A stretch of DNA of 64,000 bases from Haliotis rubra (taxonomy: Eukaryota), in NCBI RefSeq assembly GCF_003918875.1, contig NW_025767511.1:186001-250000 (forward strand). The letters run 5' to 3'. Shown here piece by piece: positions 1-53,350 of the stretch. The notes under the pieces were generated by a model. That model had not been told where the DNA came from, did no database searches, and saw nothing but the letters and a program-made list of their open reading frames with translations. Positions within the stretch are counted from its first letter, which is position 1. Each line of letters starts with the position of its first letter. The position numbers and the translations under genes were made by a program.

Positions 1-1855
1 CTATAGACCGATTACACTTTTGGAAGTTTCAGGAAAGATATTTGCTAAAGTCATTAATATCAGGTTGTATGCATGGGCTCAGCAAGAAGAATTTTTCACC
101 CCAGAGCAAGCTTGTTTTAGACATGGTTTCCAAACAGCTGATAATATTTTTATTCTTCATACAGTCGTTAATAAATACTTATCATTATATAAGGGACAGC
201 TGTACTGTGCTTTTGTCGATTTAAAGGCTGCGTTCGATTCTGTTGACAGAAATAGTTTACTTTACAAGCTGTGGCTTGGAAATGTGAAAGGAAGGACGTT
301 CTCTTTGCTTAAAAATATGTACCAAAATGTAAAGTCATGTGTCTCACTTAAAACAGGTTATACCTCTTTCTTTGAATGCATGTATGGAGTACGCCAAGGA
401 TGTCACCTATCTCCATTTTTGTTCTCCTTTTTTTATCAATGATCTAGTTGAATATTTGTCTGCTGATAATCAGAGGTGTATCGATTTACATTTTATTGAA
501 CTGTTTATTCTGCTGTTCGCCGATGACATTGTTCTATTTGATGGCACAGTTCTAGGGCTGCAGAAGAGAATTGATAAGTTAAGCACGTATTGCAATAAAT
601 GGAAACTTAAAATAAACATTGATAAGACTAAAATTATTGTTTTTAGAAAAGCAGGTAGACTGAGGAAATATGAAAAATTCTTTTTAAATGGAACCCCTTT
701 AGAGAAAGTCTCATCATATAAATATCTCAGCGTCCATTTCTCTTGCTCTGGAAATTGGTATCAAACCCCAAAAATGTTAGCAGAACAATCCTGGAAAGTA
801 CTGTCTATTGTCAGGTCCTCTATGAAAAACTTTACAAATTTACCACTGAAAGTCTTATTACATATATTTGATGTTAAAATTCTTCCAATCTTGATGTATG
901 GTTCCAAAGTTTGGGGTTTTCATCCCTCACCAAATATACAAAATATTCATGACAAGTTTTGTAAGCAAATACTGCACCTACCTATTACTACTCCAAACAT
1001 CATTGAACATGGTGAAATAGGTCGCTATTCTTTGAAGGTTAATATCTACTATAAAATTGTGAAATACTGGACCAGGTTAATAAGTCAAGATGAGATTATA
1101 ATTTTGTATAAAGTATATAAATATCAGTATTGTTTAGCTGAAAAGAATCGTGATTGTTGGGCTTTGAGAGTTAAGAAACTTCTCTTCAGCTATGGTTTTG
1201 GAAATGTTTGGGTTGATCAACAAATTACAAATGTAAACTATTTCCTCATGCAATTTAAGCAGAGGTGTATCGATATTTTGATCTTCAAATGTGGGCTTCA
1301 GATCTTGAAAAATATACTAAACTAGACTTTTTCAGACGGATGAAAATGACTGTGTCAGAAGAATATTACATTAGTGCTGTTAATGTGAAGGTATATTGTA
1401 TTGCCCTTTGTAGATTTTGCTGTTCAAATCATATGTTAATGATTGAACATGGAAGACGTTTAAATCTTGCACGCAACGAACGGTTGTGTTCCTTGTGTGT
1501 TATTCCTATGATCGAATCAGAATACCATTTTTGCCTTGAATGTCCATTCTATTCTGAGAGCATCTCTCATACCACGTTTTTATCATGTATATCCTTCTGA
1601 AAACAAGCTAGCTCTACTGTTTACTTCTCAAAATAATATTGTTATAAACAACCTTGCTAAATATATATTTTTAGCTATGAAAAAAAGAAAGAAATATTTT
1701 GGATCCTGCTGATCTTGTGTTCACATCTCTGTACAATTATACCTCTATGTTCATTCCGTCACTTTTATGGCGCTTCATGTCATATCTTGAATCCTTCTGA
1801 CATGTATGAGTATAAAGGCCCGGTGGCCCCCTTACTGAATAAACACACACACATC
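1..1855 (+). mobile_element. Non-LTR retrotransposon (LINE, RTE-X/CR1-like) 3' portion: frameshifted reverse transcriptase, Cys-rich C-terminus and 3' tail
   Basis: Overlapping ORFs 20-442, 339-1325 and 1265-1600 carry RT motifs FVDLKAAFDSV, GVRQGCHLSPFLF and LLFADD, plus C-terminal RLCSLC..ESEYHFCLECPFY. Ends with AATAAA and (CA)n near 1838-1853. Truncated by the window edge. Confidence 0.92.
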
Positions 1856-2568
1856 TCACTAAAACAAAACAAATTTCAATGCCATGAGGAGATATGTTTG
1901 TGTTTCAGTGTTTAGCAGATCTACTTTCATATTTCAACTATTATATTTTGTTTTCTACAAAAACAGGATGAATAAACTTTGTATCTTTTCTCCTGTAACT
2001 CTTTTCCATACTCTTGATCAAATTTAACCGATTTCCAGTGCTACTAACATGCCAAGGTAGTCATGTTCTTATCTCTGTACAGGAAATGGAAAAATGTTTG
2101 ATGTGAAATGAAACTGCCAAATTCGTACTAAGCATGCCTGGGAAAATCAGCAATGTCTGAACTGAATTCTCAATCGTAGATTTGGTTCATATCTCGCTAT
2201 CATGTCTGATCTATCTTAACTTATTCCGAGTGCTACTAAACTGTTCCCAGCGGTACTAAAATGCCCAAGTAAAGTCATGTTCAAATTTCTGTCCAAGAAA
2301 TGGATAAATGTTTCGAAATGAAATGAAACTGACCAATTCCTAGTAAGTATGCCTTGGAAAATCAGTGATGTCTAAACTCTATAATCAAATAATAGATTTG
2401 GTTCATACCTCTCTATCATGTCCTTCTGTATCATTTGGTTCAAATACTCCCTATATTCCGCTTCCAGTTCCCTAACATCCAGAAGAATCATCTTTACTGA
2501 GAAGATCTGTCACAGTGCGGACTTCAGCTTTGTTTGTTAGGCCTTGTTCTTTGGCCATGTTGGCTGTC

Positions 2569-2736
2569 GGGGCAGTGGGGTAGCCTTGTGGTAAAGGCGT
2601 TCGCTCGTTACACCGAGGACCTGAGTTCGATTCCCCACATCGGCACAATGTGTGAAGCCAGTTTCTGGTGCCCCCCACCGTGATATTGCTGGAATATTGC
2701 TAAAAGTGGCGTAAAACTAGACTCACTCACTCACTC
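2569..2736 (+). mobile_element. tRNA-derived SINE family A, inserted upstream of serpin copy 1 only
   Basis: A/B-box-like head (tagccttgtggtaaaggcg...gagttcgattcccc), shared body and (actc)n tail. Absent at the homologous position in copies 2-7. Confidence 0.88.
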
Positions 2737-2874
2737 CTTTTCTGTCCAATTCTGCTTCAAATGAACCACTGACATCCATCTGTAAAAGAACTGAAGGAAA
2801 TGTTGATCAGACAATTGTTGTCTTTTCAAGTTACCAGAACATTACTTGTCTTGTGTGATTTCTTCAACAGAGCC

Positions 2875-4075
2875 ATGGCTGGAAGTGGACCTGGATTGAA
2901 AACCCCAGACCTGGTGAAGAAGGTCGCTTCTGCCAACTCCCAGTTTGGTCTGGACCTGTACAAGAAAGTCGCCTCAGACCTGAAGGATTCCAATGTGTTT
3001 CTGTCTCCCTTCAGCATCTCGGCAGCTCTGGCCATGACCCAGCTGGGAGCTCGAGGTGACACAGCAGCTCAGATGAACCAGGTCCTGAAGTGGACTGACC
3101 TCCAGGACTCTGTACATCCAGGGTTTGAAGACTATCTGCGTCTTCTGAAAACACATGGAGACTACGTACTTACAACAGCCAACCGCTTGTTTGTGAATGA
3201 TAAGGCCAAGATTCTGGATGAATTTCTACAGAAGACAAAAAGCATTATGGTGCTCAGGCTGTTCTATCTGACTTTGTGGGCAATGGAGCTGGAGAGGCGG
3301 AGAAGATCAACCAATGGGTGGAATCGGAGACCAACAGCAAGATAAAGGATCTGATCACCGGTGGAATCGATCCACTGACAGCTATGATCCTTGTTAATGC
3401 CATATACTTCAAAGGCAACTGGGCAGAGAAATTTGATCCGACAAGGACAGAGAAGGGCACATTTAAGGTGAAGCCTGGAGAGACGGTACAAGTTGATATG
3501 ATGCGGATGAAGAAGAAGTTCAAGTTTGGCCTAAATGATGAACTGAACTGTTCTGTGTTGGAACTGCCTTATGTAAAGGAGGACCTTAGCATGTTTTTCT
3601 TGTTGCCTTACAAGGATGATGGTTTGGGAGAACTGGAAAGCAAACTGAATCATGAATCTTTGACGGAAGCCTTAAAACGCGTGTTCACAAAACTACTGTT
3701 GACATCTCTATGCCCAGATTTGTATTGGAATCAAGTTTTGAGCTGAATGAAGTCCTGAAGTCACTTGGAATGTCTGATGCTTTTGACAAGCAGAAAGCCG
3801 ATCTGTCCGGAATTGATGGAACCCGGCTCCTGTACGTCTCCCAGGTGGTCCACAAGGCCTTCCTGGAAGTGAACGAGGAGGGAAGTGAAGCTGCCGCGGC
3901 CACAGCAGTTACGATCAAGAAAAGATCCCGGCCTATTATTGAGCCTTTCAAGGCAGATCATCCCTTCCTGTTCCTCATCCGTGACAACCGAGCCGATGTT
4001 GTGCTTTTCATGGGCAGACTTTTTCGTCCTCCGACAGCAGGCTCAGCTGGTGTTTCACAGAAATCTGAACTGTAG
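2875..4075 (+). CDS. Serpin copy 1; RCL TIKKR|SRP; C-terminal KSEL; two frameshifts (~3240, ~3680), so pseudogene or assembly error
   Basis: ORFs 2800-3345, 3276-3746 and 3710-4075 jointly give a full serpin (NVFLSPFSIS, LVNAIYFKGNW, EEGSEAAAAT, FKADHPFLFLIRD). An in-frame upstream ATG lies at 2800. Confidence 0.93.
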
Positions 4076-4824
4076 AGCTGTTGATATGATTCTGTTACAG
4101 ATCAATGTTACTGTTATTTTGACTCTCTCCATTGATTTAATGAAGTAGATTGTTTGACTGAAACTATTCATACAACTGAATATTAGTTGAAACCTATTGG
4201 AGGGCTTCTGTTCAATATCATAGGCTGTCATTATGAATGCAGATGACCAATCTTTGACTAACTTTGTTTTAATTTAAACTGTGATCATTCCTTATGGTAT
4301 TAAGGGGCATTTTGTGTTGATAGGAAGTCAAAAGGTTTGGAGAACTGGGAATGCATATCAACTTCTCATCCTTGTATTGAAAGCAGCATTTGAAATTCCT
4401 CGTATTGAGGAAGCATGGTTTAAAATTGGCGCTGATCCGTGGCTTATTGACAGTCTGGAAATCTGATAATTGTCTTCAAACAGTCGTTTCTGGGTCTGTT
4501 AGTTCCTATGGAATTATGATAATGACGATGAATACCAATGTCATAATTAACAATAAGATCCTATATATTGTACTACATTTGCATTGAGAAACATGGTTAA
4601 AGCTGCACATTAAAATTACCCAGGTCAAAGGGTCAGTTCACACTTGCCATTCCTCTGTGTTCCTGAACCTCAGATGCTGTTTACACAAACCTTACCTTGC
4701 CCGACTGTGACACAGAATTTGGCTTATTGCTGGGGATGTCATACCATACATATCTTGATACCAAGCTGCCTGTGAGGGGATAGAAATCACATCTCATCCT
4801 ACCGGGTACCTGTTTATGTCAATA

Positions 4825-5222: not shown

Positions 5223-6842
5223 TTTGCTAAACAGCTCAGATGGTTGTGCACAGTTTAACAGGCTGTCAGAAGAAAGTACACATGCATTACTCAAGTCACA
5301 TGCTACCAAGACGACATGGCTCAAGGTCATGTTCTGCCTTTTGTGCCTCGTAAGGATGGGAAAGCCACATTAACTTGGTGCGCCTAGAAGGCAGCAAGAG
5401 TTGTATGATCCCCAGGGAGTTGAGATTGAAAATATGATGTGCCGTTGTGATGGACATCCAATGATCGAGGGAAAACAAATGTCAGTATAATAATAATATT
5501 TAAAGCAGGTCATGTCATATTGCAGGGGGTTAGAGCCCACCCACACATTGCATTTGCTGTTACAGACGTTTTCTGTACTCTGTGTTGAAGTATCTTCATG
5601 TTATTTGTCAGTGATCTGATACAATAGACTGTCAAGAATGTACTGCTGCTTTCAAGCCATGACTCTGAATAGTAACTAGCAAAACCTGTTTGATGTGCTA
5701 AAAATAAACATTGATATTCAAAACACCAACATTTTCTGGTTAAACTGGTTTGAGAGCAGGTTACTTGATCAGGCCAATAAATGAGGTAAATATTTTAAAC
5801 TTTAATGACATTTGGAGTCCTCAAAGATGCATGGGAAGACAAGGTCGCAGGTAACCTCTGCTTGAAGTAAGGCTGACTAAAGTGGTCTGTGTGGCCATGT
5901 TGCTGGGTTTTGTTTTGTTGGGTCATGCTTCAGTCAGTGCTTTGTCTATTCTGTGCAACCAGCAAGAGGTCTGTACATAGTATTCTTGACTGAGATTAAT
6001 CAATGTTCATTTTCAGAAATCCCGATTTTACTTGAGATGCTTTTCCTAAGTTGAGCCATTGATGCTATTCATCTGAATTTTGTGAATAGATGAACAAGAA
6101 GAATGTGTACACGAATGTCATTGTGGTCAGTTGGGTAGTCTGAGGGTTAAAGTGTTTGGTTCTTCTAATGGGTAAAAGTGCAAAGCCGTGTCAGGTGTCC
6201 CTATCATATTGCTGGAATATTGCTAAAAGTAGCATTAAAAAAACAACTCACTCACTCACTCACTAACTCAATTTCATAGTTCAACTATTATATTTTGTTT
6301 ACTAAAAACAGAATGATAAAAATGTCTATCTTTTCTCCTGTTACTCTTTTCCATACTCTTGATCTATCTTAACTGATTCTGAGCACTACTAAACAATTCC
6401 CAGTGGTAATAACATGCCCGAGTATAGTCATGTTCAAATTTCTGTCCAAGAAATGGAAAAATGTTTCGAAATAAAATGAAACTGACCAATTCCTAGTAAG
6501 TATGCCTTGGAAAATCAGTGATGTCTAAACTCTATAATCAAATGATAGATTTGGTTCATACCTCGCTATCATGTCTTTCTGATTCATTTGGCTCAAATAC
6601 TCCCCATTTTCCCCTTCCAGTTCCTAAACATCCTGAAGAATCATCTTTACTGAGAAGATCTGTCACAGTGCGGACTTCAGCTTTGCTTGTTAGGCCTTGA
6701 TCCTTTGCTGTCCAATTCTGCTTCAAATGAACCCACTGACATCCATCTGTAAAAGAACTGAAGAGAATGTTGATGAGACAATTTGCTGTCTTTTCAAGTT
6801 ACCAGAACGTTATTAGTCTTGTGTGATTTCTTCTACAGAACC

Positions 6843-8045
6843 ATGGCTGGAAGTGAAAGTGGACTGAAGACCCCAGACCTGGTGAAGAAGGTCGCTTCTG
6901 CCAATTCCCAGTTTGGTCTGGACCTGTACAAGAAGGTCGCCTTAGAACTGAAGGACTCCAATGTGTTTCTGTCTCCCTTCAGCATCTCGGCAGCTCTGGC
7001 CATGACCCAGCTGGGAGCTCGAGGTGACACAGCAGCTCAGATGAACCAGGTCCTGAAGTGGACTGACATCCAGGACTCCGTACATCCAGGATTTGAAGAC
7101 TATCTGCGTCTTCTGAAAACACAGGGAGACTACGTACTTACAACAGCCAACCGCTTGTTTGTGAATGATAAGGCCAAGATTCTGGATGAATTTCTACAGA
7201 AGACAGAGAAGCATTATGGTGCTCAGGCTGTCCTGTCTGACTTTGTGGGCAATGGAGCTGGAGAGGCGGAGAAGATCAACCAATGGGTGGAATCGGAGAC
7301 CAACAGCAAGATAAAGGATCTGATCACAGGTGGAATCGATCCACTCACAGCTATGATCCTTGTTAATGCCATATATTTCAAAGGCAACTGGGCAGAGAAA
7401 TTTGATCCGACAAGGACAGAGAAGGGCATGTTTAAGGTGAAGCCTGGAGAGACGGTACAAGTTGATATGATGCGGATGGAGAAGAAGTTCAGGTTTGGCC
7501 TAAATGATGAACTGAACTGTTCTGTGTTGGAACTGCCTTATGTAAAGGAGGACCTTAGCATGTTCTTCTTGTTGCCTTACAAGGATGATGGTTTGGGAGA
7601 ACTGGAAAGCAAACTGAATCATGTATCTTTGACGGAAGCCTTAAAACGTGTTGTTCACAAAACTACTGTTGACATCTCTATGCCCAGATTTGTATTGGAA
7701 TCAAGCTTTGAGATGAATGAAGTCCTGAAGTCGCTGGGAATGTCTGATGCTTTTGACAAGCAGAAAGCTGATCTGTCCGGAATTGATGGAACCCGGCTCC
7801 TGTACGTCTCCCAGGTGGTCCACAAGGCCTTCCTGGAAGTGAACGAGGAGGGAAGTGAAGCTGCTGCAGCCACAGCAGTTACGATCATGTTTTTATCCCT
7901 CCCTATCACTGAGCCTTTCAAGGCAGATCATCCCTTCCTGTTCCTCATCCGTGACAACCGAGCCGATGTTGTGCTCTTCATGGGCAGACTTGTTCGTCCT
8001 CCCACAGCAGGCTCAGCTGGTGTTTCACAGAAAACTGAACTGTAG
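6843..8045 (+). CDS. Serpin copy 2 (type A), intact; RCL TIMFL|SLP; C-terminal KTEL
   Basis: Uninterrupted ORF with all serpin motifs; accATGg Kozak context after the ttcttctacag acceptor. Confidence 0.96.
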   Translation: MAGSESGLKTPDLVKKVASANSQFGLDLYKKVALELKDSNVFLSPFSISAALAMTQLGARGDTAAQMNQVLKWTDIQDSVHPGFEDYLRLLKTQGDYVLTTANRLFVNDKAKILDEFLQKTEKHYGAQAVLSDFVGNGAGEAEKINQWVESETNSKIKDLITGGIDPLTAMILVNAIYFKGNWAEKFDPTRTEKGMFKVKPGETVQVDMMRMEKKFRFGLNDELNCSVLELPYVKEDLSMFFLLPYKDDGLGELESKLNHVSLTEALKRVVHKTTVDISMPRFVLESSFEMNEVLKSLGMSDAFDKQKADLSGIDGTRLLYVSQVVHKAFLEVNEEGSEAAAATAVTIMFLSLPITEPFKADHPFLFLIRDNRADVVLFMGRLVRPPTAGSAGVSQKTEL

Positions 8046-8227
8046 AGCTGTTGATATGATTCTGAATTAGATCAACATTAATTAAGTAGATTGTTTGACT
8101 GAAACTATTCAAAGAGCTTCTGACAGTTTCCGGAAGTAGGCTAGTATATTGTTATTGTTTCCCCAGATGAAGGTACAAGAGTTCAGTAGGGATGTAGATA
8201 CTGATGGTTATTGGTATTCTTTACGTG

Positions 8228-8372
8228 TAACACCATATCCGACATTGAGGACCATATCCATAGTTAGAGACCATATCCGTTGTTGAGGGCCATATGTAAA
8301 TTTAAGGACCATATCCATTGTTGAGGACATATGTAATGTTAAGCACCATATCCGTTGTTGAGGACCAAATGT
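8228..8372 (+). repeat. Short minisatellite (gaccatatccrttgttgag-type units) in the serpin 3' flank; repeated after copies 2-6
   Basis: Recurrent accatatcc/ttgagg motif; homologues at ~11780, ~15325, ~18875 and ~23333. Confidence 0.8.
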
Positions 8373-8732
8373 AATGTGGGGAATCAAACCAGGGTCTTCG
8401 GCATGACAAGCCAGTGGTTTAACCACTAGGCTACCCCACTGCCCCTGTGTGAGAATGAACAGAGGATTATTTTGATTAAACCCACTTGCCTTAGAAGCCA
8501 CCACATGTGTTACATGTGCTTCAGTGTGGGGAGGGACTGAACACCCAGAAAATGTCAGGAGTCAAACTGCCGAATGTGGTCATTGATCCAACAACTTCTC
8601 TAATGCAACTTGATTCACCTGATCTGTGAAGTATGCACTTTACACAGGTCAATGTGCTACCACATAATGACAACCCTACAGATGTATATCAACAGAAAAC
8701 TGTATATTTGCTTCACTTATGGTTCAATGGAA

Positions 8733-8738
8733 AATAAA
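8733..8738 (+). terminator. Candidate polyadenylation signal ~690 nt after the copy 2 stop, conserved in each internal unit
   Basis: AATAAA in ggaaaataaattta; the same motif occurs at ~12281, ~15826, ~20287 and ~23833. Confidence 0.4.
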
Positions 8739-10394
8739 TTTATTCAAATTAAAAAGTGCATCTTTCAATGCATATTCACAAAGTCATCTTTACTGAAAGG
8801 TGATGATTATTTTGTTTTACTCTATCACGGGTTTAACTGTTTGTTAGGATTTTCAAAGATGCTTGAGAAGAAAAACTTGGAGGTAACCTCGGCTTGACCT
8901 AAAGTTGACTGAAGTGAATTGGGTGTCCGTGTTGCTTGGTTCGGTGTTGTTGGGTCATGCTTCAGTCAGTGGTTTGCCTATCCCAGATTCTATTATGTTC
9001 CATGAGCAAGATGTCTGGAGATAATCATGATAATAGTCTCGGCTGACATTAATCAATGTTCATTTTCTGAAATCCACATTTGACTCAATGTTTTACGTAA
9101 GTTATGCTATTGCTGTGATTTATCTGAATTTTGTGAGTACCGGTAGATGAACAACAAGAGAGTGTACTGGAATGCCATCAAGGTCAGTTGGGTAGTCTTG
9201 TGCTTAAAGTGTTTGAGTCTTCTCATGGGTAAAACGTGCGAAGCCCGTGTCTGATGTCTCTGTGATATTGTCGGAAAATTGTTAAAAATGGCATAACAAA
9301 CCCAACTCACTCACAATCACACTCACTCACTCAAACTCACTTAAATCCACTCATTCACTCACTGCACTGATATTCCTTGAGTAAGTGAATGAGTAAGTGA
9401 GTTGGTTTCCAGCATTATCATGGCGGGGGACACCAGAAATGGGCTTCACACAAATTACCCATGTGGGGAATCGAACCCTGGCCCTCGGCATGATGAGTGG
9501 AAGCTTTACCCACTAGGCTACCCCACAGTCCCCTGGAGCTGGGCGTATCTGGGCGCTGAATTCAGTTAGATTACATGAGGTAGTTGATTAATATCTTAAA
9601 TATCAGAAGTGGATGCAGAATTTTGAGAAAGAGAATGGAAGTACAAGGACAGTATATCAGATAGATATTAGTAGTATCTGAAAAGGGCACTTCCGGGAAA
9701 TCCCCCACCCCTTGGTTCTGACAGTGAATTTGGGGGATGGATATGTCACAAATGGGAAGCTAAAAGCAAAATAGATTTTAGTACCATGAGGATATATGTT
9801 TGTGTAAAAGGTTTTAGCTGAGTCTACTTTCATAGCTCAGCTATTTTATTTTGTTTTCTACAAAAACAGAATGATAAAGATTTTCTACTGTTGCTTCTCC
9901 TTTTCCGTACTCTTGATCCATCTTAACTGATTGTGAGTGCTACCAAACAATACCCAGCACCACTAACATGCCCAGGTATAGTCATGTTCTTATCTATGTC
10001 TAAGAAATGGGAAAAAAAGGAAACAAAAATGACATGTAACTGCCCAATTATTAGTAAGCCAGCCTTTGAAAACCTGCAGTGTCTTAACTGAATTATCAAT
10101 CGTAGATTTGGTTCATACCTCTCTATCATCTCTTTCTGTATGATTTTGCTCAAATACTCCCCATTTTCCCCTTCCAGTTCCTAAACATCCTGAAGAATCA
10201 TCTTTACTGAGAAGATCTGTCACAGTATGGACTTCAGCTTTGCTTGTTAGGCCTTGATCCTTTGCTGTCCAATTCTGCTTCAAATGAACTGACATTCATC
10301 TGTAAAAGAACTGAAGAATATGTTGATCAGACAATTGTTGTCTTTTCAAGTTACCAGAACATTACTTGTCTTGTGTGATTTCTTCTACAGAACC

Positions 10395-11594
10395 ATGGCT
10401 GGAAGTGGAACTGGACTGAAGACCCCAGACCTGGTGAAGAAGGTCGCTTCTGCCAATTCCCAGTTTGGTCTGGACCTGTACAAGAAGGTCGCCTTAGACC
10501 TGAAGGACTCCAATGTGTTTCTGTCTCCCTTCAGCATCTCAGCAGCTCTGGCCATGACCCAGCTGGGAGCTCGAGGTGACACAGCAGCTCAGATGAACCA
10601 GGTCCTGAAGTGGACTGACATCCAGGACTCCGTACATCCAGGGTTTGAATACTATCTGCGTCTTCTGAAAACACAGGAAGACTACGTACTTACAACAGCC
10701 AACCGCTTGTTTGTGAATGAAAAGGCCAAGATTCTGGATGAATTTCTACAGAAGACAGAGAAGCATTATGGTGCTCAGGCTGTTCTGTCTGACTTTGTGG
10801 GCAATGGAGCTGGAGAGGCTGAGAAGATCAACCAATGGGTGGAATCGGAGACCAACAGCAAGATAAAGGATCTGATCACTGGTGGAATCGATCCACTCAC
10901 AGCTATGATCCTTGTTAATGCCATATACTTCAAAGGCAACTGGGCAGAGAAATTTGATCCGACAAGAACAGAGAAGGGCACATTTAAGGTGAAGCCTGGA
11001 GAGACAGTACAAGTTGATATGATGCGGATGAAGAAGAAGTTCAGGTTTGGCCTAAATGATGAACTGAACTGTTCTGTGTTGGAACTGCCTTATGTAAAGG
11101 AGGACCTTAGCATGTTCTTCTTGTTGCCTGACAAAGATGATGGTTTGGGTGAACTGGAAAGCAAACTGAATCATGTATCTTTGATGGAAGCCTTAAAACG
11201 TGTTCACAAAACTACTGTTAACATCTCTATGCCCAGATTTGTATTGGAATCAAGCTTTGAGATGAATGAAGTCCTGAAGTCACTTGGAATGTCTGATGCT
11301 TTTGATGAGCAGAAAGCCGATCTGTCCGGGATTGATGGAACCCGGCTCCTGTATGTCTCTAAGGTGGTCCACAAGGCCTTCCTGGAAGTCAACGAGGAGG
11401 GAAGTGAAGCTGCCGCGGCCACAGCAGTTATATTCATGAGCAACTCGCTCCCTATAATTGAGCCTTTCAAGGCAGATCATCCCTTCCTGTTCCTCATCCG
11501 TGACAACCGAGCCGATGTTGTGCTCTTCATGGGCAGACTTGTTCGTCCTCCCACAGCAGGCTCAGCTGGTGTTTCACAGAAAACTGAACTGTAG
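10395..11594 (+). CDS. Serpin copy 3 (type B), intact; RCL IFMSN|SLP; KTEL
   Basis: Uninterrupted ORF 10320-11594 including an upstream in-frame ATG; all serpin motifs present. Confidence 0.96.
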   Translation: MAGSGTGLKTPDLVKKVASANSQFGLDLYKKVALDLKDSNVFLSPFSISAALAMTQLGARGDTAAQMNQVLKWTDIQDSVHPGFEYYLRLLKTQEDYVLTTANRLFVNEKAKILDEFLQKTEKHYGAQAVLSDFVGNGAGEAEKINQWVESETNSKIKDLITGGIDPLTAMILVNAIYFKGNWAEKFDPTRTEKGTFKVKPGETVQVDMMRMKKKFRFGLNDELNCSVLELPYVKEDLSMFFLLPDKDDGLGELESKLNHVSLMEALKRVHKTTVNISMPRFVLESSFEMNEVLKSLGMSDAFDEQKADLSGIDGTRLLYVSKVVHKAFLEVNEEGSEAAAATAVIFMSNSLPIIEPFKADHPFLFLIRDNRADVVLFMGRLVRPPTAGSAGVSQKTEL

Positions 11595-13937: not shown

Positions 13938-15138
13938 ATGGCTGGAAGTGGAACTGGACTGAAGACCCCAGACCTGGTGAAGAAGGTCGCTTCTGCCAAT
14001 TCCCAGTTTGGTCTGGACCTGTACAAGAAGGTCGCCTTAGAACTGAAGGACTCCAATGTGTTTCTGTCTCCCTTCAGCATCTCAGCAGCTCTGGCCATGA
14101 CCCAGCTGGGAGCTCGAGGGGACACAGCAGCTCAGATGAACCAGGTCCTGAAGTGGACTGACCTCCAGGACTCCGTACATCCAGGGTTTGAAGACTATCT
14201 CGTCTTCTGAAAACACAGGAGACTACGTACTTACAACAGCCAACCGCTTGTTTGTGAATGATAAGGCCAAGATTCTGGATGAATTTCTACAGAAGACAGA
14301 GAAGCATTATGGTGCTCAGGCTGTTCTGTCTGACTTTGTGGGCAATGGAGCTGGAGAGGCGGAGAAGATCAACCAATGGGTGGAATCGGAGACCAACAGC
14401 AAGATAAAGGATCTGATCACAGGTGGAATCGATCCACTCACAGCTATGATCCTTGTTAATGCCATATACTTCAAAGGCAACTGGGCAGAGAAATTTGATC
14501 CGACAAGGACAGAGAAGGGCATGTTTAAGGTGAAGCCTGGAGAGGCAGTACAAGTTGATATGATGCGGATGGAGAAGAAGTTCAGGTTTGGCCTAAATGA
14601 TGAACTGAACTGTTCTGTGTTGGAACTGCCTTATGTAAAGGAGGACCTTAGCATGTTCTTCTTGTTGCCTTACAAGGATGATGGTTTGGGAGAACTGGAA
14701 AGCAAACTGAATCATGTATCTTTGACGGAAGCCTTAAAACGCGTTGTTCACAAAACTACTGTTGACATCTCTATGCCCAGATTTGTATTGGAATCAAGCT
14801 TTGAGATGAATGAAGTCCTGAAGTCGCTGGGAATGTCTGATGCTTTTGACGAGCAGAAAGCTGATCTGTCCGGAATTGATGGAAGTCGCCTCCTGTATGT
14901 CTCTAAGGTGGTCCACAAGGCCTTCCTGGAAGTGAACGAGGAGGGAAGTGAAGCTGCTGCAGCCACAGCAGTTAGGATCATGACAAGATCGCTCCCTATA
15001 ATTGAGCCTTTCAAGGCAGATCATCCCTTCCTGTTCCTCATCCGTGACAACCGAGCCGATGTTGTGCTCTTCATGGGCAGACTTGTTCGTCCTCCCACAG
15101 CAGGCTCAGCTGGTGTTTCACAGAAAACTGAACTGTAG
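13938..15138 (+). CDS. Serpin copy 4 (type A); RCL RIMTR|SLP; KTEL; two single-G losses (~14200, ~14219)
   Basis: ORFs 13863-14210 and 14188-15138. The sequence reads tatctcgt where paralogues have tatctgcgt, and caggagac where they have cagggagac. Confidence 0.93.
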
Positions 15139-17485
15139 AGCTGTTGATATGATTCTGAATTAGATCAACATTAATTAAGTAGATTGTTTGACTGAAACTA
15201 TTCAAAGAGCTGCTGACAGTTTCCGGAAGTAGGCTAGTATATTGTTATTGTTTCCCTAGATGAAGGTATAAGAGTTCAGTAGGGATGTAGATACTGATGG
15301 TTATTGGTATTCTTTACGTGTAACACCATATCCGACATTGAGGACCATATCCATAGTTAGAGACCATATCCGCTGTTGAGGGCCATATGTAAATTTAAGG
15401 ACCATATCCATTGTTGAGGACATATGTAATGTTAAGCACCATATCCGTTGTTGAGGACCAAATGTAATGTGGGGAATCAAACCAGGGTCTTCGGCATGAC
15501 AAGCCAATGGTTTAACCACTAGGCTATCCCACCGCCCCTGTGTGAGAATGAACAGAGGATTATTTTGATTAAACCCACTTGCCTTAGAAGCCACCACATG
15601 TGTTACATGTGCTTCAGTGTGGGGAGGGACTGAACACCCAGAAAATGTCAGGAGTCAAACTGCCGAATGTGGTCATTGATCCAACAACTTCTCTAATGCA
15701 ACTTGATTCACCTGATCTGTGAAGTATGCACTTTACACAGGTCAATGTGCTACCACATAATGACAACCCTACAGATGTATATCAACAGAAAACTGTATAT
15801 TTGCTTCACGCATGGTTCAATGGAAAATAAATTTATTCGAGATTAAAAAGTGCATCTTTCAATGCATATTCACAAAGTCATCTTTACTGAAAGGTGATGA
15901 TTATTTTGTTTTACTCTATCACGGGTTTAACTGTTTGTTAGGATTTTCAAAGATGCTTGAGAAGAAAAACTTGGAGGTAACCTCGGCTTGACCTAAAGTT
16001 GACTGAAGTGAATTGGGTGTCCGTGTTGCTGGGTTCGGTGTTGTTGGGTCATGCTTCAGTCAGTGGTTTGCCTATCCCAGATTCTATTATGTTCCATGAG
16101 CAAGATGTCTGGAGATAATCATGATAATAGTCTCGGCTGACATTAATCAATGTTCATTTTCTGAAATCCACATTTGACTCGATGTTTTACGTAAGTTATG
16201 CTATTGCTGTGATTTATCTGAATTTTGTGAGTACCGGTAGATGAACAACAAGAGAGTGTACTGGAATGCCATCAAGGTCAGTTGGGTAGTCTTGTGCTTA
16301 AAGTGTTTGAGTCTTCTCATGGGTAAAACGTGCGAAGCCCGTGTCTGATGTCTCTGTGATATTGTCGGAAAATTGTTAAAAATGGCATAACAAACCCAAC
16401 TCACTCACAATCACACTCACTCACTCAAACTCACTTAAATCCACTCATTCACTCACTGCACTGATATTCCTTGAGTAAGTGAATGAGTAAGTGAGTTGGT
16501 TTCCAGCATTATCATGGCGGGGGACACCAGAAATGGGCTTCACACAAATTACCCATGTGGGGAATCGAACCCTGGCCCTCGGCATGATGAGTGGAAGCTT
16601 TACCCACTAGGCTACCCCACTGTCCCCTGGAGCTGGAGCGATGTGGGCGCTGAATTCAGTTAGATTACGCAGGTAGTTGATTAATATCTTAAATATCAGA
16701 AGTGGATGCAGAATTTTGAGAAAGAGAATGGAAGTACAAGGACAGTATATCAGATAAATATTAGTAGTATCTGAAAAGGGCACTTCCGGGAAATCCCCCA
16801 CCCCTTGGTTCTGACAGTGAATTTGGGGGATGGATATGTCACAAATGGGAAGCTAAAAGCAAAATAGATTTTAGTACCATGAGGATATATGTTTGTGTAA
16901 AAGGTTTTAGCTGAGTCTACTTTCATAGCTCAGCTATTTTATTTTGTTTTCTACAAAAACAGAATGATAAGGATTTTCTACTGTTGCTTCTCCTTTTCCG
17001 TACTCTTGATCCATCTTAACTGATTGTGAGTGCTACCAAACAATACCCAGCACCACTAACATGCCCAGGTATAGTCATGTTCTTATCTATGTCAAGAAAT
17101 GGGAAAAAAGGAAACAAAAATGACATGTAACTGCCCAATTATTAGTAAGCATGCCTTTGAAAACCTGCAGTGTCTTAACTGAATTATCAATCGTAGATTT
17201 GGTTCATACCTCTCTATCATCTCTTTCTGTATGATTTTGCTCAAATACTCCCCATTTTCCCCTTCCAGTTCCTAAACATCCTGAAGAATCATCTTTACTG
17301 AGAAGATCTGTCACAGTATGGACTTCAGCTTTGCTTGTTAGGCCTTGATCCTTTGCTGTCCAATTCTGCTTCAAATGAACTGACATTCATCTGTAAAAGA
17401 ACTGAAGAATAGGTTGATCAGACAATTGTTGTCTTTTCAAGTTACCAGAACATTACTTGTCTTGTGTGATTTCTTCTACAGAACC

Positions 17486-18688
17486 ATGGCTGGAAGTGGA
17501 ACTGGACTGAAGACCCCAGACCTGGTGAAGAAGGTCGCTTCTGCCAATTCCCAGTTTGGTCTGGACCTGTACAAGAAGGTCGCCTTAGACCTGAAGGACT
17601 CCAATGTGTTTCTGTCTCCCTTCAGCATCTCGGCAGCTCTGGCCATGACCCAGCTGGGAGCTCGAGGGGACACAGCAGCTCAGATGAACCAGGTCCTGAA
17701 GTGGACTGACATCCAGGACTCCTGTACATCCAGGGTTTGAAGACTATCTGCGTCTTCTGAAAACACAGGGAGACTACGTACTTACAACAGCCAACCGCTT
17801 GTTTGTGAATGATAAGGCCAAGATTCTGGATGAATTTCTACAGAAGACAGAGAAGCATTATGGTGCTCAGGCTGTTCTATCTGACTTTGTGGGCAATGGA
17901 GCTGGAGAGGCTGAGAAGATCAACCAATGGGTGGAATCGGAGACCAACAGCAAGATAAAGGATCTGATCACTGGTGGAATCGATCCACTGACAGCTATGA
18001 TCCTTGTTAATGCCATATACTTCAAAGGCAACTGGGCAGAGAAATTTGATCCGACAAGGACAGAGAAGGGCACATTTAAGGTGAAGCCTGGAGAAACAGT
18101 ACAAGTTGATATGATGCGGATGAAGAAGAAGTTCAGGTTTGGCCTAAATGATGAACTGAACTGTTCTGTGTTGGAACTGCCTTATGTAAAGGAGGACCTT
18201 AGCATGTTCTTCTTGTTGCCTGACAAAGATGATGGTTTGGGAGAACTGGAAAGCAAACTGAATCATGAATCTTTGACGGAAGCCTTAAAACGCGTGTTCA
18301 CAAAACTACTGTTAACATCTCTATGCCCAGATTTGTATTGGAATCAAGCTTCAAGCTGAATGAAGTCCTGAAGTCGCTTGGAATGTCTGATGCTTTTGAC
18401 GAGCAGAAAGCCGATCTGTCCGGGATCGATGGAACCCGGCTCCTGTATGTCTCCCAGGTGGTCCACAAGGCCTTCCTGGAAGTGAACGAGGAGGGAAGTG
18501 AAGCTGCTGCAGCCACAGCAGTTATGATCATGTGCAACTCGCTCCCTATAATTGAGCCTTTCAAGGCAGATCATCCCTTCCTGTTCCTCATCCGTGACAA
18601 CCGAGCCGATGTTGTGCTCTTCATGGGCAGACTTGTTCGTCCTCCCACAGCAGGCTCAGCTGGTGTTTCACAGAAAACTGAACTGTAG
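17486..18688 (+). CDS. Serpin copy 5 (type B); RCL MIMCN|SLP; KTEL; frameshifts at ~17722 and ~18293
   Basis: ORFs 17414-17740, 17799-18359 and 18323-18688 together form a complete serpin. Confidence 0.93.
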
Positions 18689-21944: not shown

Positions 21945-23147
21945 ATGGCTGGAAGTGGAACTGGACTGAAGACCCCAGACCTGGTGAAGAAGGTCGCTTC
22001 TGCCAATTCCCAGTTTGGTCTGGACCTGTACAAGAAGGTCGCCTTAGAACTGAAGGACTCCAATGTGTTTCTGTCTCCCTTCAGCATCTCGGCAGCTCTG
22101 GCCATGACCCAGCTGGGAGCTCGAGGTGACACAGCAGCTCAGATGAACCAGGTCCTGAAGTGGACTGACATCCAGGACTCCGTACATCCAGGGTTTGAAG
22201 ACTATCTGCGTCTTCTGAAAACACAGGGAGACTACGTACTTACAACAGCCAACCGCTTGTTTGTGAATGATAAGGCCAAGATTCTGGATGAATTTCTACA
22301 GAAGACAGAGAAGCATTATGGTGCTCAGGCTGTTCTGTCTGACTTTGTGGGCAATGGAGCTGGAGAGGCGGAGAAGATCAACCAATGGGTGGAATCGGAG
22401 ACCAACAGCAAGATAAAGGATCTGATCACAGGTGGAATCGATCCACTGACAGCTATGATCCTTGTTAATGCCATATACTTCAAAGGCAACTGGGCAGAGA
22501 AATTCGATCCGACAAGGACAGAGAAGGGCATGTTTAAGGTGAAGCCTGGAGAGACGGTACAAGTTGATATGATGCGGATGGAGAAGAAGTTCAGGTTTGG
22601 CCTAAATGATGAACTGAACTGTTCTGTGTTGGAACTGCCTTATGTAAAGGAGGACCTTAGCATGTTCTTCTTGTTGCCTTACAAGGATGATGGTTTGGGA
22701 GAACTGGAAAGCAAACTGAATCATGTATCTTTGACGGAAGCCTTAAAACGCGTTGTTCACAAAACTACTGTTGACATCTCTATGCCCAGATTTGTATTGG
22801 AATCAAGCTTTGAGATGAATGAAGTCCTGAAGTCGCTGGGAATGTCTGATGCTTTTGACGAGCAGAAAGCTGATCTGTCCGGAATTGATGGAAGTCGCCT
22901 CCTGTATGTCTCTAAGGTGGTCCACAAGGCCTTCCTGGAAGTGAACGAGGAGGGAAGTGAAGCTGCTGCAGCCACAGCAGTTACATTCATGTTTTTATCC
23001 CTCCCTATCTCTGAGCCTTTCAAGGCAGATCATCCCTTCCTGTTCCTCATCCGTGACAACCGAGCCGATGTTGTGCTCTTCATGGGCAGACTTGTTCGTC
23101 CTCCCACAGCAGGCTCAGCTGGTGTTTCACAGAAAACTGAACTGTAG
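21945..23147 (+). CDS. Serpin copy 6 (type A), intact; RCL TFMFL|SLP; KTEL
   Basis: Uninterrupted ORF 21870-23147. Confidence 0.96.
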   Translation: MAGSGTGLKTPDLVKKVASANSQFGLDLYKKVALELKDSNVFLSPFSISAALAMTQLGARGDTAAQMNQVLKWTDIQDSVHPGFEDYLRLLKTQGDYVLTTANRLFVNDKAKILDEFLQKTEKHYGAQAVLSDFVGNGAGEAEKINQWVESETNSKIKDLITGGIDPLTAMILVNAIYFKGNWAEKFDPTRTEKGMFKVKPGETVQVDMMRMEKKFRFGLNDELNCSVLELPYVKEDLSMFFLLPYKDDGLGELESKLNHVSLTEALKRVVHKTTVDISMPRFVLESSFEMNEVLKSLGMSDAFDEQKADLSGIDGSRLLYVSKVVHKAFLEVNEEGSEAAAATAVTFMFLSLPISEPFKADHPFLFLIRDNRADVVLFMGRLVRPPTAGSAGVSQKTEL

Positions 23148-25491: not shown

Positions 25492-26694
25492 ATGGCTGGA
25501 AGTGGAACTGGACTGAAGACCCCAGACCTGGTGAAGAAGGTCGCTTCTGCCAATTCCCAGTTTGGTCTGGACCTGTACAAGAAAGTCGCCTTAGACCTGA
25601 AGGACTCCAATGTGTTTCTGTCTCCCTTCAGCATCTCGGCAGCTCTGGCCATGACCCAGCTGGGAGCTCGAGGTGACACAGCAGCTCAGATGAACCAGGT
25701 CCTGAAGTGGACTGACATCCAGGACTCCGTACATCCAGGGTTTGAAGACTATCTGCGTCTTCTGAAAACACACAGGGAGACTACGATACTTACAACAGCC
25801 AACCGCTTGTTTGTGAATGATAAGGCCAAGATTCTGGATGAATTTCTACAGAAGACAGAGAAGCATTATGGTGCTCAGGCTGTTCTGTCTGACTTTGTGG
25901 GCAATGGAGCTGGAGAGGCGGAGAAGATCAACCAATGGGTGGAATCGGAGACCAACAGCAAGATAAAGGATCTGATCACAGGTGGAATCGATCCACTGAC
26001 AGCTATGATCCTTGTTAATGCCATATACTTCAAAGGCAACTGGGCAGAGAAATTCGATCCGACAAGGACAGAGAAGGGCACATTTAAGGTGAAGCCTGGA
26101 GAGACCGTACAAGTTGATATGATGCGGATGAAGAAGAAGTTCAAGTTTGGCCTAAATGATGAACTGAACTGTTCTGTGTTGGAACTGCCTTATGTAAAGG
26201 AGGACCTTAGCATGTTCTTCTTGTTGCCTGACAAAGATGATGGTTTGGGAGAACTGGAAAGCAAACTGAATCATGAATCTTTGACGGAAGCCTTAAAACG
26301 TGTTCACAAAACTACTGTTGACATCTCTATGCCCAGATTTGTGCTGGAATCAAGCTTTGAGCTGAATGAAGTCCTGAAGTCGCTGGGAATGTCTGATGCT
26401 TTTGATGAGCAGAAAGCCGATCTGTCCGGAATTGATGGAACCCGGCTCCTGTACATCTCCCAGGTGGTCCACAAGGCCTTCCTGGAAGTGAACGAGGAGG
26501 GAAGTGAAGCTGCTGCAGCCACAGCAGTTAGGATCATGACAAGATCGCTCCCTATAATTGAGCCTTTCAAGGCAGATCATCCCTTCCTGTTCCTCATCCG
26601 TGACAACCGAGCCGATGTTGTGCTCTTCATGGGCAGACTTGTTCGTCCTCCCACAGCAGGCTCAGCTGGTGTTTCACAGAAAACTGAACTGTAG
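25492..26694 (+). CDS. Serpin copy 7 (type B); RCL RIMTR|SLP; KTEL; compensating +2/+1 indels at ~25770-25787
   Basis: ORF 25417-26694 is open. KTHRETTILTT replaces KTQGDYVLTT because of a local frame excursion. Confidence 0.95.
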   Translation: MAGSGTGLKTPDLVKKVASANSQFGLDLYKKVALDLKDSNVFLSPFSISAALAMTQLGARGDTAAQMNQVLKWTDIQDSVHPGFEDYLRLLKTHRETTILTTANRLFVNDKAKILDEFLQKTEKHYGAQAVLSDFVGNGAGEAEKINQWVESETNSKIKDLITGGIDPLTAMILVNAIYFKGNWAEKFDPTRTEKGTFKVKPGETVQVDMMRMKKKFKFGLNDELNCSVLELPYVKEDLSMFFLLPDKDDGLGELESKLNHESLTEALKRVHKTTVDISMPRFVLESSFELNEVLKSLGMSDAFDEQKADLSGIDGTRLLYISQVVHKAFLEVNEEGSEAAAATAVRIMTRSLPIIEPFKADHPFLFLIRDNRADVVLFMGRLVRPPTAGSAGVSQKTEL

Positions 26695-31098: not shown

Positions 31099-31169
31099 CA
31101 TTGGGGAACAAGGTTCCATTTTTTGTATCCTTACCAAAAGTTATTTGTTTTTGTAGAGGTGGTGGGAAG

Positions 31170-32330
31170 ATGTCGTGCAGCAAGGTGTCCCAGCTTGCTG
31201 CAGCCGATGCCAAGTTCAGCATTGACCTCTACAGAGCACTGTCCAGTTCCATGTCTGACCAGAATCTGTTCCTGTCCCCCTACAGTGTCCTGTCTGTCAT
31301 GGCCATGGCATACATAGGTGCCCGAGGAACTACAGCCTCAGAGATGTTGCAGGCCTTAAGACTGACGGAAATATCAGAAACCATCCACATCGCTTTTCAG
31401 GAGTACCTGGCAGTTATGAGCAGCAAAGCAGAGGGCTGTGATTTAGCTTCAGCTAATAAATTATATGTGAGAAAGGACAAGCAACTGTGCTCGGAGTTTT
31501 CCAAAAAGGTGGCACAGCATTTTGGAGCTGAGACTGACTCATGTGACTTCATCGGAAACCCAGAATCAGAGTGTGCCAGGATCAATGCCTGGGTGGCCAA
31601 ACAGACCCACGATAGGATCCAAGGTGTCATCTCACCGCTTTCTCTCACTAAAGACACATCAATGATTTTAGTAAATGCCATCTATTTTAAAGGAAAATGG
31701 GAAAATGTTTTTGATAAGGGCTTAACTGAAAAGGGCTCTTTCACAGTCTCCTCTTCAAAGAAGGTCGCGGTTGATATGATGAACACTGTGGACACGTTTG
31801 GGTACAGTGAGATTAAAGACTTGGACTGCACGGCACTGGAACTACCCTATGTAGGGGACAGACTCAGCATGGTGATCCTCCTTCCCAGAAAATCAAATGG
31901 TTTAAGTTCCCTGGAACAGAACCTCAAGCCTCATCATCTCCAGGTCCAGTTCACTGGTAATTCATGGAATGAGGTTGATGTGTCACTTCCAAGGTTTAAG
32001 ATGGAGTCCAGTTTTGAGCTTGCTGATGTCCTGTCCATGTTAGGGATGTGTACTGCTTTTGACCCCGTGGAGGCCAACTTTTCTGGGATTGATCCATCAG
32101 GGCTGTTGACCTTGTCCAGGGTCGTCCACAAGACCTTTGTGGAGGTCAATGAGGAGGGTACAGAGGCAGCAGCATGCACCATGATGGACTGTGTGGATGG
32201 GTTGGTGATACAGGAGAAGCATGTCTTCAGGGCTGATCATCCGTTTATATTTTTCATCCGAGACAGACGAAGTGAGATGATCCTTTTTCTTGGGAGGATT
32301 GTGAATCCAGAAGGCCTGGAAACATGCTAA
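31170..32330 (+). CDS. Divergent intracellular (clade-B-like) serpin with uninterrupted CDS; RCL GTEAAACTMMDCVD|GL
   Basis: Intact ORF with NLFLSPYS, LVNAIYFKGKW, EEGTEAAA and FRADHPFIFFIRD. Acceptor tttttgtag ends at 31156 and ATG is at 31170. No signal peptide or KDEL-like end. Confidence 0.96.
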   Translation: MSCSKVSQLAAADAKFSIDLYRALSSSMSDQNLFLSPYSVLSVMAMAYIGARGTTASEMLQALRLTEISETIHIAFQEYLAVMSSKAEGCDLASANKLYVRKDKQLCSEFSKKVAQHFGAETDSCDFIGNPESECARINAWVAKQTHDRIQGVISPLSLTKDTSMILVNAIYFKGKWENVFDKGLTEKGSFTVSSSKKVAVDMMNTVDTFGYSEIKDLDCTALELPYVGDRLSMVILLPRKSNGLSSLEQNLKPHHLQVQFTGNSWNEVDVSLPRFKMESSFELADVLSMLGMCTAFDPVEANFSGIDPSGLLTLSRVVHKTFVEVNEEGTEAAACTMMDCVDGLVIQEKHVFRADHPFIFFIRDRRSEMILFLGRIVNPEGLETC

Positions 32331-41891: not shown

Positions 41892-42031
41892 NNNNNNNNN
41901 NNNNNNNNNNNNNNNNNNNNNNNNNNNNNNNNNNNNNNNNNNNNNNNNNNNNNNNNNNNNNNNNNNNNNNNNNNNNNNNNNNNNNNNNNNNNNNNNNNNN
42001 NNNNNNNNNNNNNNNNNNNNNNNNNNNNNNN
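41892..42031. other. Assembly gap (140 N)
   Basis: Run of N. Confidence 1.
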
Positions 42032-47719: not shown

Positions 47720-48930
47720 CCTCCCACTACCCGTCCACCCACACTCGCCAGAGACCTCCCCTACCATCTATCCACCCTCACCAGAGACCTCCCCTACCAT
47801 CTACCCCACCTCACCATAGACCTCCCACTACCATCTATCCACCCTCACCATAGACCTCCCACTACCATCCACCCATCCCTCACCAGAGACCTCCCCTACC
47901 ATCTACCCACCCTCACCATAGACCTCCACCTACCATTCACCCATCCCTCACCAGAGACCTCCCCTACCATCTACCCACCCTCATCATAAACCTCCCACTA
48001 CCACCCATTCTCCCTCGCCAGAGACCTCCCACTACCATCCACCCACCCTCACCAGAAACCTCCCACTACCATCCACCCACCCTCGCCAGAGACCTCCCAC
48101 TACCATGTACCCACCCTCACCAGAAACCTCCCACTACCATCCACCCACCCTCGCCAGAGACCTCCCACTACCATGTACCCACCCTCACCAGAGACCTTCC
48201 ACTACCATCCACCCACCCTCGCCAGAGACCTCCCACTACCATCTACCCACCCTCACCAGAGACCTCTTACTACCATCCACCCAATCACACCAGAGACCTC
48301 CCACTACCATCCACCCACCCTCACCAGAGACCTCCCACTATCATCTACCCACCCTCGCCAGAGACCTCCCACTACCATCCACCCACCCTCACCAGAGACC
48401 TCCCACTACCATCCACCAATCCCTCACCAGAGACCTCGCACTACCATCTACCCACCCTCATCAGAGACCTACCACTACCATCCACCCAATCACGCCAGAG
48501 ACCTCCCACTACCATCCACCCACCCTCACAAGAGACCTCCCACTACCGATCCACCCACCTCTAGCCAGAGACCTTCCACTACCGATCCACCCATCCCTCG
48601 CCAGAGACCTTCCACTACCGATCCAGCCATCCCCTCGCCAGAGACCTCCCACTACCATCCACCCATCCCTCACAAGACACCTCCCACTACCATCCACCCA
48701 CCCTCGCCAGAGACCTCCCACTACAATCAAACCACCCTCGCCAGAGACCTTCCACTACCGATCCACCCATCCCTCGCCAGAGACCTCCCACTACCATCCA
48801 CCCATCCTCGCCAGAGACCTCCCACTACCATCCACCCACCCTCACCAGAGACCTCCCACTACCACCCACCCACCCTCGCTGGAGACCTCCTACTACCGGT
48901 CCACCTACAATGGCAAGAGACCTAGCATTT
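47720..48930. repeat. 34-bp minisatellite, ~35 copies
   Basis: Unit ccagagacctcccactaccatccacccaccctcR. Confidence 0.96.
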
Positions 48931-52559: not shown

Positions 52560-53350
52560 ACGTAGCTGTTGGATTTTGACGTCGTAGATATAGGGCAGTG
52601 ACGGCGTAGCTGTTGGATAGTGACGCCGTAGATATAGGGCAGTGACGGCGTAGCTGTTGGATAGTGACGGCGCAGATAAAGGGCAGTGGCGGCGTAGCTG
52701 TTGGATAGTGACGCCGTAGATATAGGGCAGTGACGGCGTAGCTGTTGGATAGTGACGCCGTAGATATAGGGCAGTGACGGCGTAGCTGTTGGATAGTGAC
52801 GGCGCAGATATAGGGCAGTGACGGCGTTGCTGTTGGATAGTGACGCCGTAGATATAGGGCAGTGACGGCGTTGCTGTTGGATAGTGACGCCGTAGATATA
52901 GGGCAGGGACGGTGTAGCTGTTGGATAGTGAGGCCGTAGATATTGCGCAGTGACGGCGTTGCTGTTGGATGGTGACGCCGTAGATATAGGGCAGTGACGG
53001 CGTAGCTGTTGGATGGTGACGCCGTAGATATAGCGCAGTGACGGCGTTGCTGTTGGATGGTGACGCCGTAGATATAGGGCAGTGACGGCGTAGCTGTTGG
53101 ATAGTGACGCCGTAGATATAGGGCAGTGACGGCGTTGCTGTTGGATGGTGACGCCGTAGATATAGGGCAGTGACGGCGTAGCTGTTGGATGGTGACGCCG
53201 TAGATATAGGGCAGTGACGGCGTAGCTATTGGATAGTGACGCCGTAGAAAAAGGGCAGTGACGGCGTTGCTGTTGGATGGTGACGCAGTAGATATGTTGT
53301 GACGGCGTTGCTGTTGGATAGTGACGCCGTAGATATAGGGCAGTGACGGC
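52560..53350. repeat. 44-bp minisatellite, ~18 copies
   Basis: Unit gtagatatagggcagtgacggcgtagctgttggatagtgacgcc (starts at 52584, 52628, ...). Confidence 0.96.

Follow-up and report, generated by a model that had tools for sequence, protein, structure and literature searches.

Kumar and Ragg described a class of ancient secretory-pathway serpins that combine an intron-free body with a KR|S bait (the bar marks the scissile bond) and KDEL, HEEL or SDEL tails (PMC2556349). The amphioxus member, Branchiostoma Spn-1 (Bl-Spn1 / Bfl-Spn-1), is a convertase inhibitor with an intron-free body and a short C-terminal extension of the KDEL type (PMC2556349). It is arranged head-to-head with PDCD10, a linkage that has been described for Spn-1-type serpins of deuterostomes (PMC2556349). 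TMTKR|S is a further bait reported for the class, and neuroserpin (SERPINI1) was traced to the same lineage by Kumar and Ragg (PMC2556349). So far, the characterised ER-tailed KR|S serpins come from fly and amphioxus, and the presence of such serpins in sea urchin and sea anemone has been inferred. Drosophila Spn42Da (Spn4A) exists in forms with and without a signal peptide. It acts in the secretory pathway, carries an ER signal, inhibits furin-type convertases and offers several baits per locus (PMC2556349, PMC4147316), and Kumar and Ragg cautioned that its resemblance to the class may be convergent (PMC2556349).

We analysed a stretch of 64,000 nucleotides from the abalone Haliotis rubra (hereafter the window; positions refer to it unless another locus is named), in which seven tandem single-exon serpin copies are repeated in units of about 3.55 kb (Table 1). 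NCBI names the models of this array 'leukocyte elastase inhibitor-like'. From the M-A-G-S start to the stop, the serpin body is free of introns in 7/7 copies as well as in the H. asinina and H. rufescens loci. Nucleotide divergence between copies amounts to 0.257 (25.7%) in the bait codons P6-P5' versus 0.024 (2.4%) in the other coding sequence, a roughly tenfold excess for the baits across the seven copies. In Spn42Da, by contrast, bait variants are provided by alternative exon cassettes, whereas those of the array are provided by whole-gene tandem copies; amphioxus Spn-1 has a single close paralogue. The units alternate between two subtypes along the array, which suggests duplication of a two-unit block.

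Table 1. Positions of the serpin copies and of features of copies 1 and 2 in the H. rubra window.
Feature	Position	Strand	Basis or remark
5'-truncated LINE with reverse-transcriptase ORFs	20..1600	+	RVT_1, 8e-20
Equivalent of the distal acceptor, copy 1	2465..2467		copy-2 counterpart at 6620
SINE specific to copy 1	2569..2736	.	dispersed in many copies across the window; not present in the other units
Upstream in-frame ATG and 25-codon hydrophobic extension (M-L-I-R-Q...)	2800..2874	+	would occur only in transcripts that retain this stretch
Proximal 3' splice site (cag)	2868..2870	+	four bases 5' of the start codon; in all copies and three other Haliotis loci
Serpin coding body, copy 1	2875..4075	+	single exon from M-A-G-S to K-S-E-L plus stop; ORFs, seven-copy alignment, Pfam Serpin
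Frame break 1, five-A run one base short compared with all other copies and outgroups	3237..3241	+	alignment column 371
Frame break 2, CGCGTG	3678..3683	+	seven-copy alignment
Hinge P17-P8, E-E-G-S-E-A-A-A-A-T	3875..3904	+	inhibitory type; direct sequence reading
Bait P5-P2', T-I-K-K-R|S-R	3911..3931	+	direct reading; P5 Thr 3911-3913, P4 Ile 3914-3916, P3 Lys 3917-3919, P2 Lys 3920-3922, P1 Arg 3923-3925, P1' Ser 3926-3928, P2' Arg 3929-3931
Predicted scissile bond, copy 1	between 3925 and 3926
C-terminal extension, 14 residues past the serpin core	4031..4072	+	ORF reading; K-S-E-L at 4061-4072, stop at 4073-4075
Candidate 3' UTR specific to copy 1	4076..4640	+	poly(A) signal ATTAAA at 4609-4614; unique in the window
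Leader mini-exon upstream of copy 2, M-L-Q-S-V-L-C-L-F-C-A-T-S-K, donor AG|GT	5925..5968	+	only intact leader of the ancestral type
Copy 2, M-A-G-S start to stop	6843..8045
Copy 3, M-A-G-S start to stop	10395..11594
Copy 4, M-A-G-S start to stop	13938..15138
Copy 5, M-A-G-S start to stop	17486..18688
Copy 6, M-A-G-S start to stop	21945..23147
Copy 7, M-A-G-S start to stop	25492..26694

An earlier note on this DNA had drawn attention to copy 1 on account of a basic bait, IKKR|SR, and a C-terminal KSEL, and both were confirmed by direct reading. The body of copy 1 is read in three frames owing to two 1-base frame errors. Its 121-aa piece at 3710-4072 matches the Pfam Serpin family at 1.2e-37 (1.4e-123 for an intact sister copy), and together with the reading of the small-residue hinge this identifies an inhibitory serpin fold. 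With the bait register set by counting 17 residues from the P17 Glu, copy 1 has a dibasic P2-P1 followed by Ser at P1' (K-K-R|S at 3917-3928). The register of hinge and bait is the same as in amphioxus Spn-1 (NMMKR|S; PMC2556349), with K-K-R|S-R in copy 1 and M-K-R|S-L in the amphioxus protein. The Spn42Da bait, RRKR, differs from that of copy 1 in having an Arg at P4, and its tail is HDEL.

In form, a motif of the KDEL-receptor type closes the C-terminal extension of copy 1. Spn-1 differs in its canonical KDEL, its experimentally supported signal peptide and its intact frame. We considered KSEL as a speciality of copy 1 and discarded the idea: KTEL, which differs from KSEL by one A-to-T change, ends the six other copies of the array and the genes of four other Haliotis species. 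As all seven copies end in K(T/S)EL, the tail does not single out copy 1. A reporter ending in AKxEL localised to the ER with any x but Pro, and KTEL is a validated ER-retrieval motif whose bearers are ER-resident (PMC2140024), albeit a weaker signal, as in AGR2 (PMC2140024, PMC7519367). What does distinguish copy 1 is its number of private nucleotide changes, which is 18 in the seven-copy alignment versus 0-6 in the other copies. Its flanks had been described as the most divergent of the array, which is partly right: the 3' flank is unique within the window from 4105 onward, and the SINE and the LINE lie upstream.

Many of the nearest relatives outside Haliotis that we found by word search pair a (K/R)-R|S bait with a KDEL-like C-terminal tetrapeptide, and such a bait together with a K/R/H-x-E-L tail is seen in serpins of molluscs, hemichordates, echinoderms and amphioxus. 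Bait and tail are TIMKR|SL and HQEL in Patella, MQKR|SL and KDEL in Mactra, and RIQTR|SL and RIQKR|SL with KQEL in Gigantopelta and one further relative. The hemichordate relatives carry MRKR|S with RDEL or KDEL, Amphiura (P0079) carries TMKKR|SI with RDEL, and Holothuria MRKR|SI with KDEL. Amphioxus Spn-1 (P0048), which is 47% identical to the array and has a clear signal peptide, carries NMMKR|SL with KDEL. A tree calculated for 113 relatives placed the Haliotis genes inside a clade of 35 rows, 24/35 of which bear a tail; the tail-less members are nested as local paralogues, and the result was unchanged when the bait and tail columns were left out. Because the baits and tails of the relatives, the tree and the validation of KTEL agree, the idea that copy 1 belongs to a family of convertase-inhibiting Spn-1-type serpins is well founded at the family level. 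Judged by sequence, this locus and the Patella, Gigantopelta and Mactra relatives show that the design of an ER-tailed KR|S serpin is also present in molluscs.

In the phylogeny, which had been proposed as a check, the array groups with tailed KR|S serpins. Its best matches among solved structures belong to the cytosolic clade B: SERPINB1 is the best natural match (4ga7, 300 bits), and MENT and B3/B4 are among the further top ones. Neuroserpin scores below clade B at 229 bits; it resembles the array in its P1 Arg and in a C-terminal sorting sequence ending in FEEL, and differs in that it has no dibasic bait and is secreted by the regulated pathway. Linkage to PDCD10, a second proposed check, was not found in the available flanks, where it was assessed from gene calls: no gene is called within 10 kb 5' of the H. 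asinina or H. rufescens genes, and the DNA upstream of copy 1 consists of the LINE and repeats. Upstream of the intron, repeats alone matched when synteny was compared with H. asinina and H. rufescens. When the 121-aa piece was used to look for protein fragments resembling copy 1, nothing above 62% identity was returned.

The earlier note went further and held that copy 1, as a working ER-retained convertase inhibitor, was the source of the other copies, which were then retargeted away from its dibasic bait. Copy 1 indeed has both KKR|S and KSEL, it is the most divergent of the seven copies, its leader remnant is of an older type common to copy 2 and H. asinina, and KR|S is ancient in the family. 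The other abalones argue against this order of events. The bait RIMTR|SL is common to H. asinina, H. rufescens, H. cracherodii and H. discus (a cloned cDNA) as well as to copies 4 and 7, and the bait codons of these two copies equal those of H. asinina except at one synonymous site. Orthologues of the ancestral form of the array are represented by the H. discus discus protein (AKB08729, 'serpin B-like protein 1') and by the NCBI models from H. asinina, H. rufescens and H. cracherodii, which have 399 aa, an M-A-G-S start, a KTEL tail and 88-90% identity; unlike copy 1 they carry RIMTR|SL (or RVMTN|SL), and a dibasic P2-P1 was present in none of the orthologues retrieved from other Haliotis species.

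The 21-kb locus that we fetched from H. asinina holds a single tail-bearing gene, followed by the orthologue of an eighth serpin (see below), and the 3' flank of this gene aligns with the 3' flank of copy 7; for the 3' flank of copy 1, no counterpart was found in the locus of H. asinina or in that of H. rufescens. A nucleotide tree from which the bait codons had been left out unites the seven copies in one clade (support 83); copy 1 has the longest branch in it, and its placement, with a support of only 34-42, is not basal. The frameshifts of copy 1, the deleted ATG of its leader and the lack of an NCBI protein model further weigh against a working founder. From the outgroup baits and the ancestral 3' flank kept by copy 7 we conclude that the KKR bait of copy 1 is derived. 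Founder status was thus rejected on the outgroup baits, the flanks and the copy tree; this point is already largely refuted, and the full scenario built on it is highly improbable. The comparison with the outgroups indicates that RIMTR|SL is the ancestral Haliotis bait, and the proposed retargeting of daughters from a dibasic ancestor is reversed within Haliotis, with a monobasic ancestor giving rise to a daughter that regained KR.

We consider it fairly likely that copy 1 is a real but derived paralogue in a lineage-specific tandem expansion, in H. rubra, of one conserved Spn-1-type gene. The ancestor would have been a molluscan Spn-1-type serpin with an intron-free body, a (K/R)-R|S bait and an extension ending in a KDEL-like tetrapeptide. 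Compared with the ancestral bait cassette, four codons differ in copy 1 (R->T, M->K, T->K, L->R); these changes would have converted RIMTR|SL into TIKKR|SR and thereby recreated the KR|S of other phyla.

Two further serpins were noted in the vicinity of the tail-bearing genes. An eighth, divergent serpin without a tail is located at 31101-32330 of the window, with its counterpart at 14984-16213 of the H. asinina locus (L001). It adjoins the tail-bearing gene in H. asinina too, so the pair predates the expansion of the array. A paralogue without a tail, present in H. rufescens and H. cracherodii (L002 28420-28755; P0007, P0008), has a polybasic bait that reads V-V-R-K-R|K-R-V-R and V-L-Q-R|K-R-V-R. 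Over roughly its first 110 residues it hardly differs from the array copies, suggesting a chimeric origin or gene conversion.

In this assembly, copy 1 is disabled. Because frame break 1 falls within a homopolymer, it may be an assembly error. At frame break 2, copy 1 exceeds the ancestral in-frame form, which copies 3 and 7 share with the outgroups, by two bases and falls one base short of copies 2, 4 and 6. The same lesion is present in copy 5, which is frame-broken too; NCBI corrected it in that copy and labelled the product 'LOW QUALITY PROTEIN'. For copy 1, NCBI provides no protein model. The SINE sits between the distal acceptor and the coding exon, and the LINE separates copy 1 from what remains of its leader (L003 3620-3740), immediately 5' of the window, where an 84-nt deletion has taken out the leader ATG. 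Taken together, the two frameshifts, the two mobile elements, the leader deletion and the missing protein model would fit a long-dead pseudogene at the edge of the array, whose KKR bait is mere drift.

Several observations make such a relic quite improbable. Outside the bait, 8 of the private changes of copy 1 are synonymous and 4 are non-synonymous, while 23% synonymous changes would be expected under neutrality (P = 0.0016). The dN/dS of the private branch is ~0.15, and this substitution pattern indicates that copy 1 evolved under purifying selection outside the bait. The length of the bait, the hinge and the P1' Ser were all kept. We also examined X10 and X24, two transcriptome-sized contig sets from a related abalone (organism B), which have zero depth over intergenic DNA and are probably RNA runs. 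An X10 contig covers 4034-4640 at 97.5% identity and is exact through the KSEL codons. The candidate 3' UTR is covered both by these probable RNA contigs and by an H. rubra DNA contig, and the 5' half of copy 1 found no cover in X10 or X24 at 97% identity. The substitution pattern and the occurrence of a copy-1-type 3' UTR in probable RNA imply that copy 1 is not an old relic.

The frameshifts themselves have to be read with the reliability of the assembly in mind. DNA contigs of the source species, H. rubra, show at full depth a T that is missing from the assembly at 5193, and an extra T at 6782 (copy 2) is absent from the X10 contig. Such single-base disagreements reveal 1-base indel errors in the assembly near the array, demonstrated at 5193 and probable at 6782. 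Copy 4 has two frame-breaking 1-base deletions and zero private substitutions, a combination that looks like assembly error. We regard copy 1 as a derived and possibly recently disabled daughter with a recreated convertase-type bait, and the chance that it still works in living animals as about even.

Copy 1 had also been put forward as ER-retained, but its main start has no signal peptide and its leader ATG is deleted. The M-A-G-S start of the main ORF has a strong Kozak context and is followed by an N-terminus that is not hydrophobic; the cloned H. discus orthologue and the majority of the models begin at M-A-G-S as well. Upstream of it, two acceptors are available. The NCBI model P0001 joins a leader exon at the proximal acceptor in phase 2. 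At copy 2, X10 contains a junction at the distal site (6620), and X24 starts at the proximal one (6838). Use of the distal site at copy 2 keeps the in-frame 25-codon extension, a weak candidate for a signal peptide. This extension is intact in copy 1, but Arg and Asp break up its hydrophobic core, and H. rufescens copy B lacks it. The 424-aa forms predicted by NCBI were rejected as proof of a signal peptide: their extension is the translated 3' end of an intron (pyrimidine tract and cag), and 4/4 differences from H. asinina in it are non-synonymous.

The leader mini-exon is the second element that could give access to the ER. It is spliced in phase 2, and diverged versions of it occur upstream of copies 3-7. 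In NCBI XP_046551365.1, copy 2 is skipped and its leader continues directly into copy 3 (5781-11594; L003 9977-15790), so one promoter and leader may serve several complete serpin cassettes downstream. As a conserved signal-peptide exon the leader is weakened by its ORF being out of frame in H. asinina, by a 4-nt deletion in organism B and by the loss of the ATG in copy 1.

Alternatively, the array could consist of clade-B-like serpins without a signal peptide, in which K(T/S)EL has no ER role and copy 1, as one member of a diversified repertoire for defence, traps an Arg-specific protease of cytosolic or pathogen origin. The start context and non-hydrophobic N-terminus, the structural matches to SERPINB1, MENT and B3/B4, and the unconserved leader frame all agree with such a role, as do the hypervariable baits, which are typical of defence serpins. 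Vertebrate clade-B serpins such as SERPINB1 have no cleavable signal peptide, and human SERPINB8 inhibits furin (PMC6784293) without an ER signal. Clade-B serpins, unlike the array, have neither a C-terminal extension nor a KDEL-like tail; clade B is marked by the absence of terminal extensions, and the array has a conserved C-terminal extension of 14 residues and no evident signal peptide. Moreover, the final E-L with K/H at the fourth-last position is kept at the C-terminal end in Haliotis, Gigantopelta and Patella, which represent three gastropod orders. The linker before it varies, and a conserved K/H-x-E-L end behind a variable linker argues that some product reaches the ER lumen. Paralogues without a tail show that it is dropped where it is not needed. 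Finally, in two hemichordates and an ophiuroid, NCBI predicts pairs of isoforms that either have a clear signal peptide of 14-15 residues immediately before an internal Met-Ala or start at this position. Given this evidence, we hold an exclusively clade-B-like array, and with it a cytosolic or defence role for copy 1, to be unlikely. ER access has, on sequence grounds, a slightly better than even chance for the array and a lower one for copy 1.

A more elaborate scenario can also be envisaged. An ancient, normally single-copy ER convertase-inhibitor serpin would have been amplified in abalones and become a bait-diversified repertoire that is sent to the ER or the cytosol by the choice between the two 3' splice sites, with the shared copy-2 leader feeding several copies and copy 1 being a live gene with a re-evolved dibasic bait. 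The distal site would keep the hydrophobic in-frame extension, and the proximal site would remove it. We consider this combination as a whole quite unlikely.

Under the favoured reading of copy 1 as a derived paralogue, its mode of action would follow from bait and tail. If translated and admitted to the secretory pathway, copy 1 would inhibit as a suicide substrate: after cleavage behind Lys-Arg by a kexin/furin-like convertase, its loop would enter sheet A and hold the protease as a trapped acyl-enzyme. Molecules that escape from the ER would be brought back by the KDEL receptor through the K-S-E-L tail. Copy 1 itself is of modest value, because it may be non-functional. The array as a whole is of wider use: after amplification the body stayed nearly identical, the bait changed about tenfold faster, and one daughter went back to a dibasic bait. 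It thus represents a natural series on how bait sequence relates to specificity for convertases or other proteases, and it allows testing whether a weak KTEL or KSEL together with alternative 5' ends produces dual ER/cytosolic serpins.

Other features of the window lie downstream of the array. Long repeat ORFs rich in Pro, His and Thr are present on both strands at 48105-48932 and 52397-53377, and a similar His/Pro-rich repeat ORF is located downstream of the H. asinina serpins (L001 16932-17951). A run of 140 N at 41892-42031 represents an assembly gap or masked sequence. The ORF at 61868-63106 codes for a leucine-rich-repeat protein whose C-terminus holds a transmembrane-like segment.
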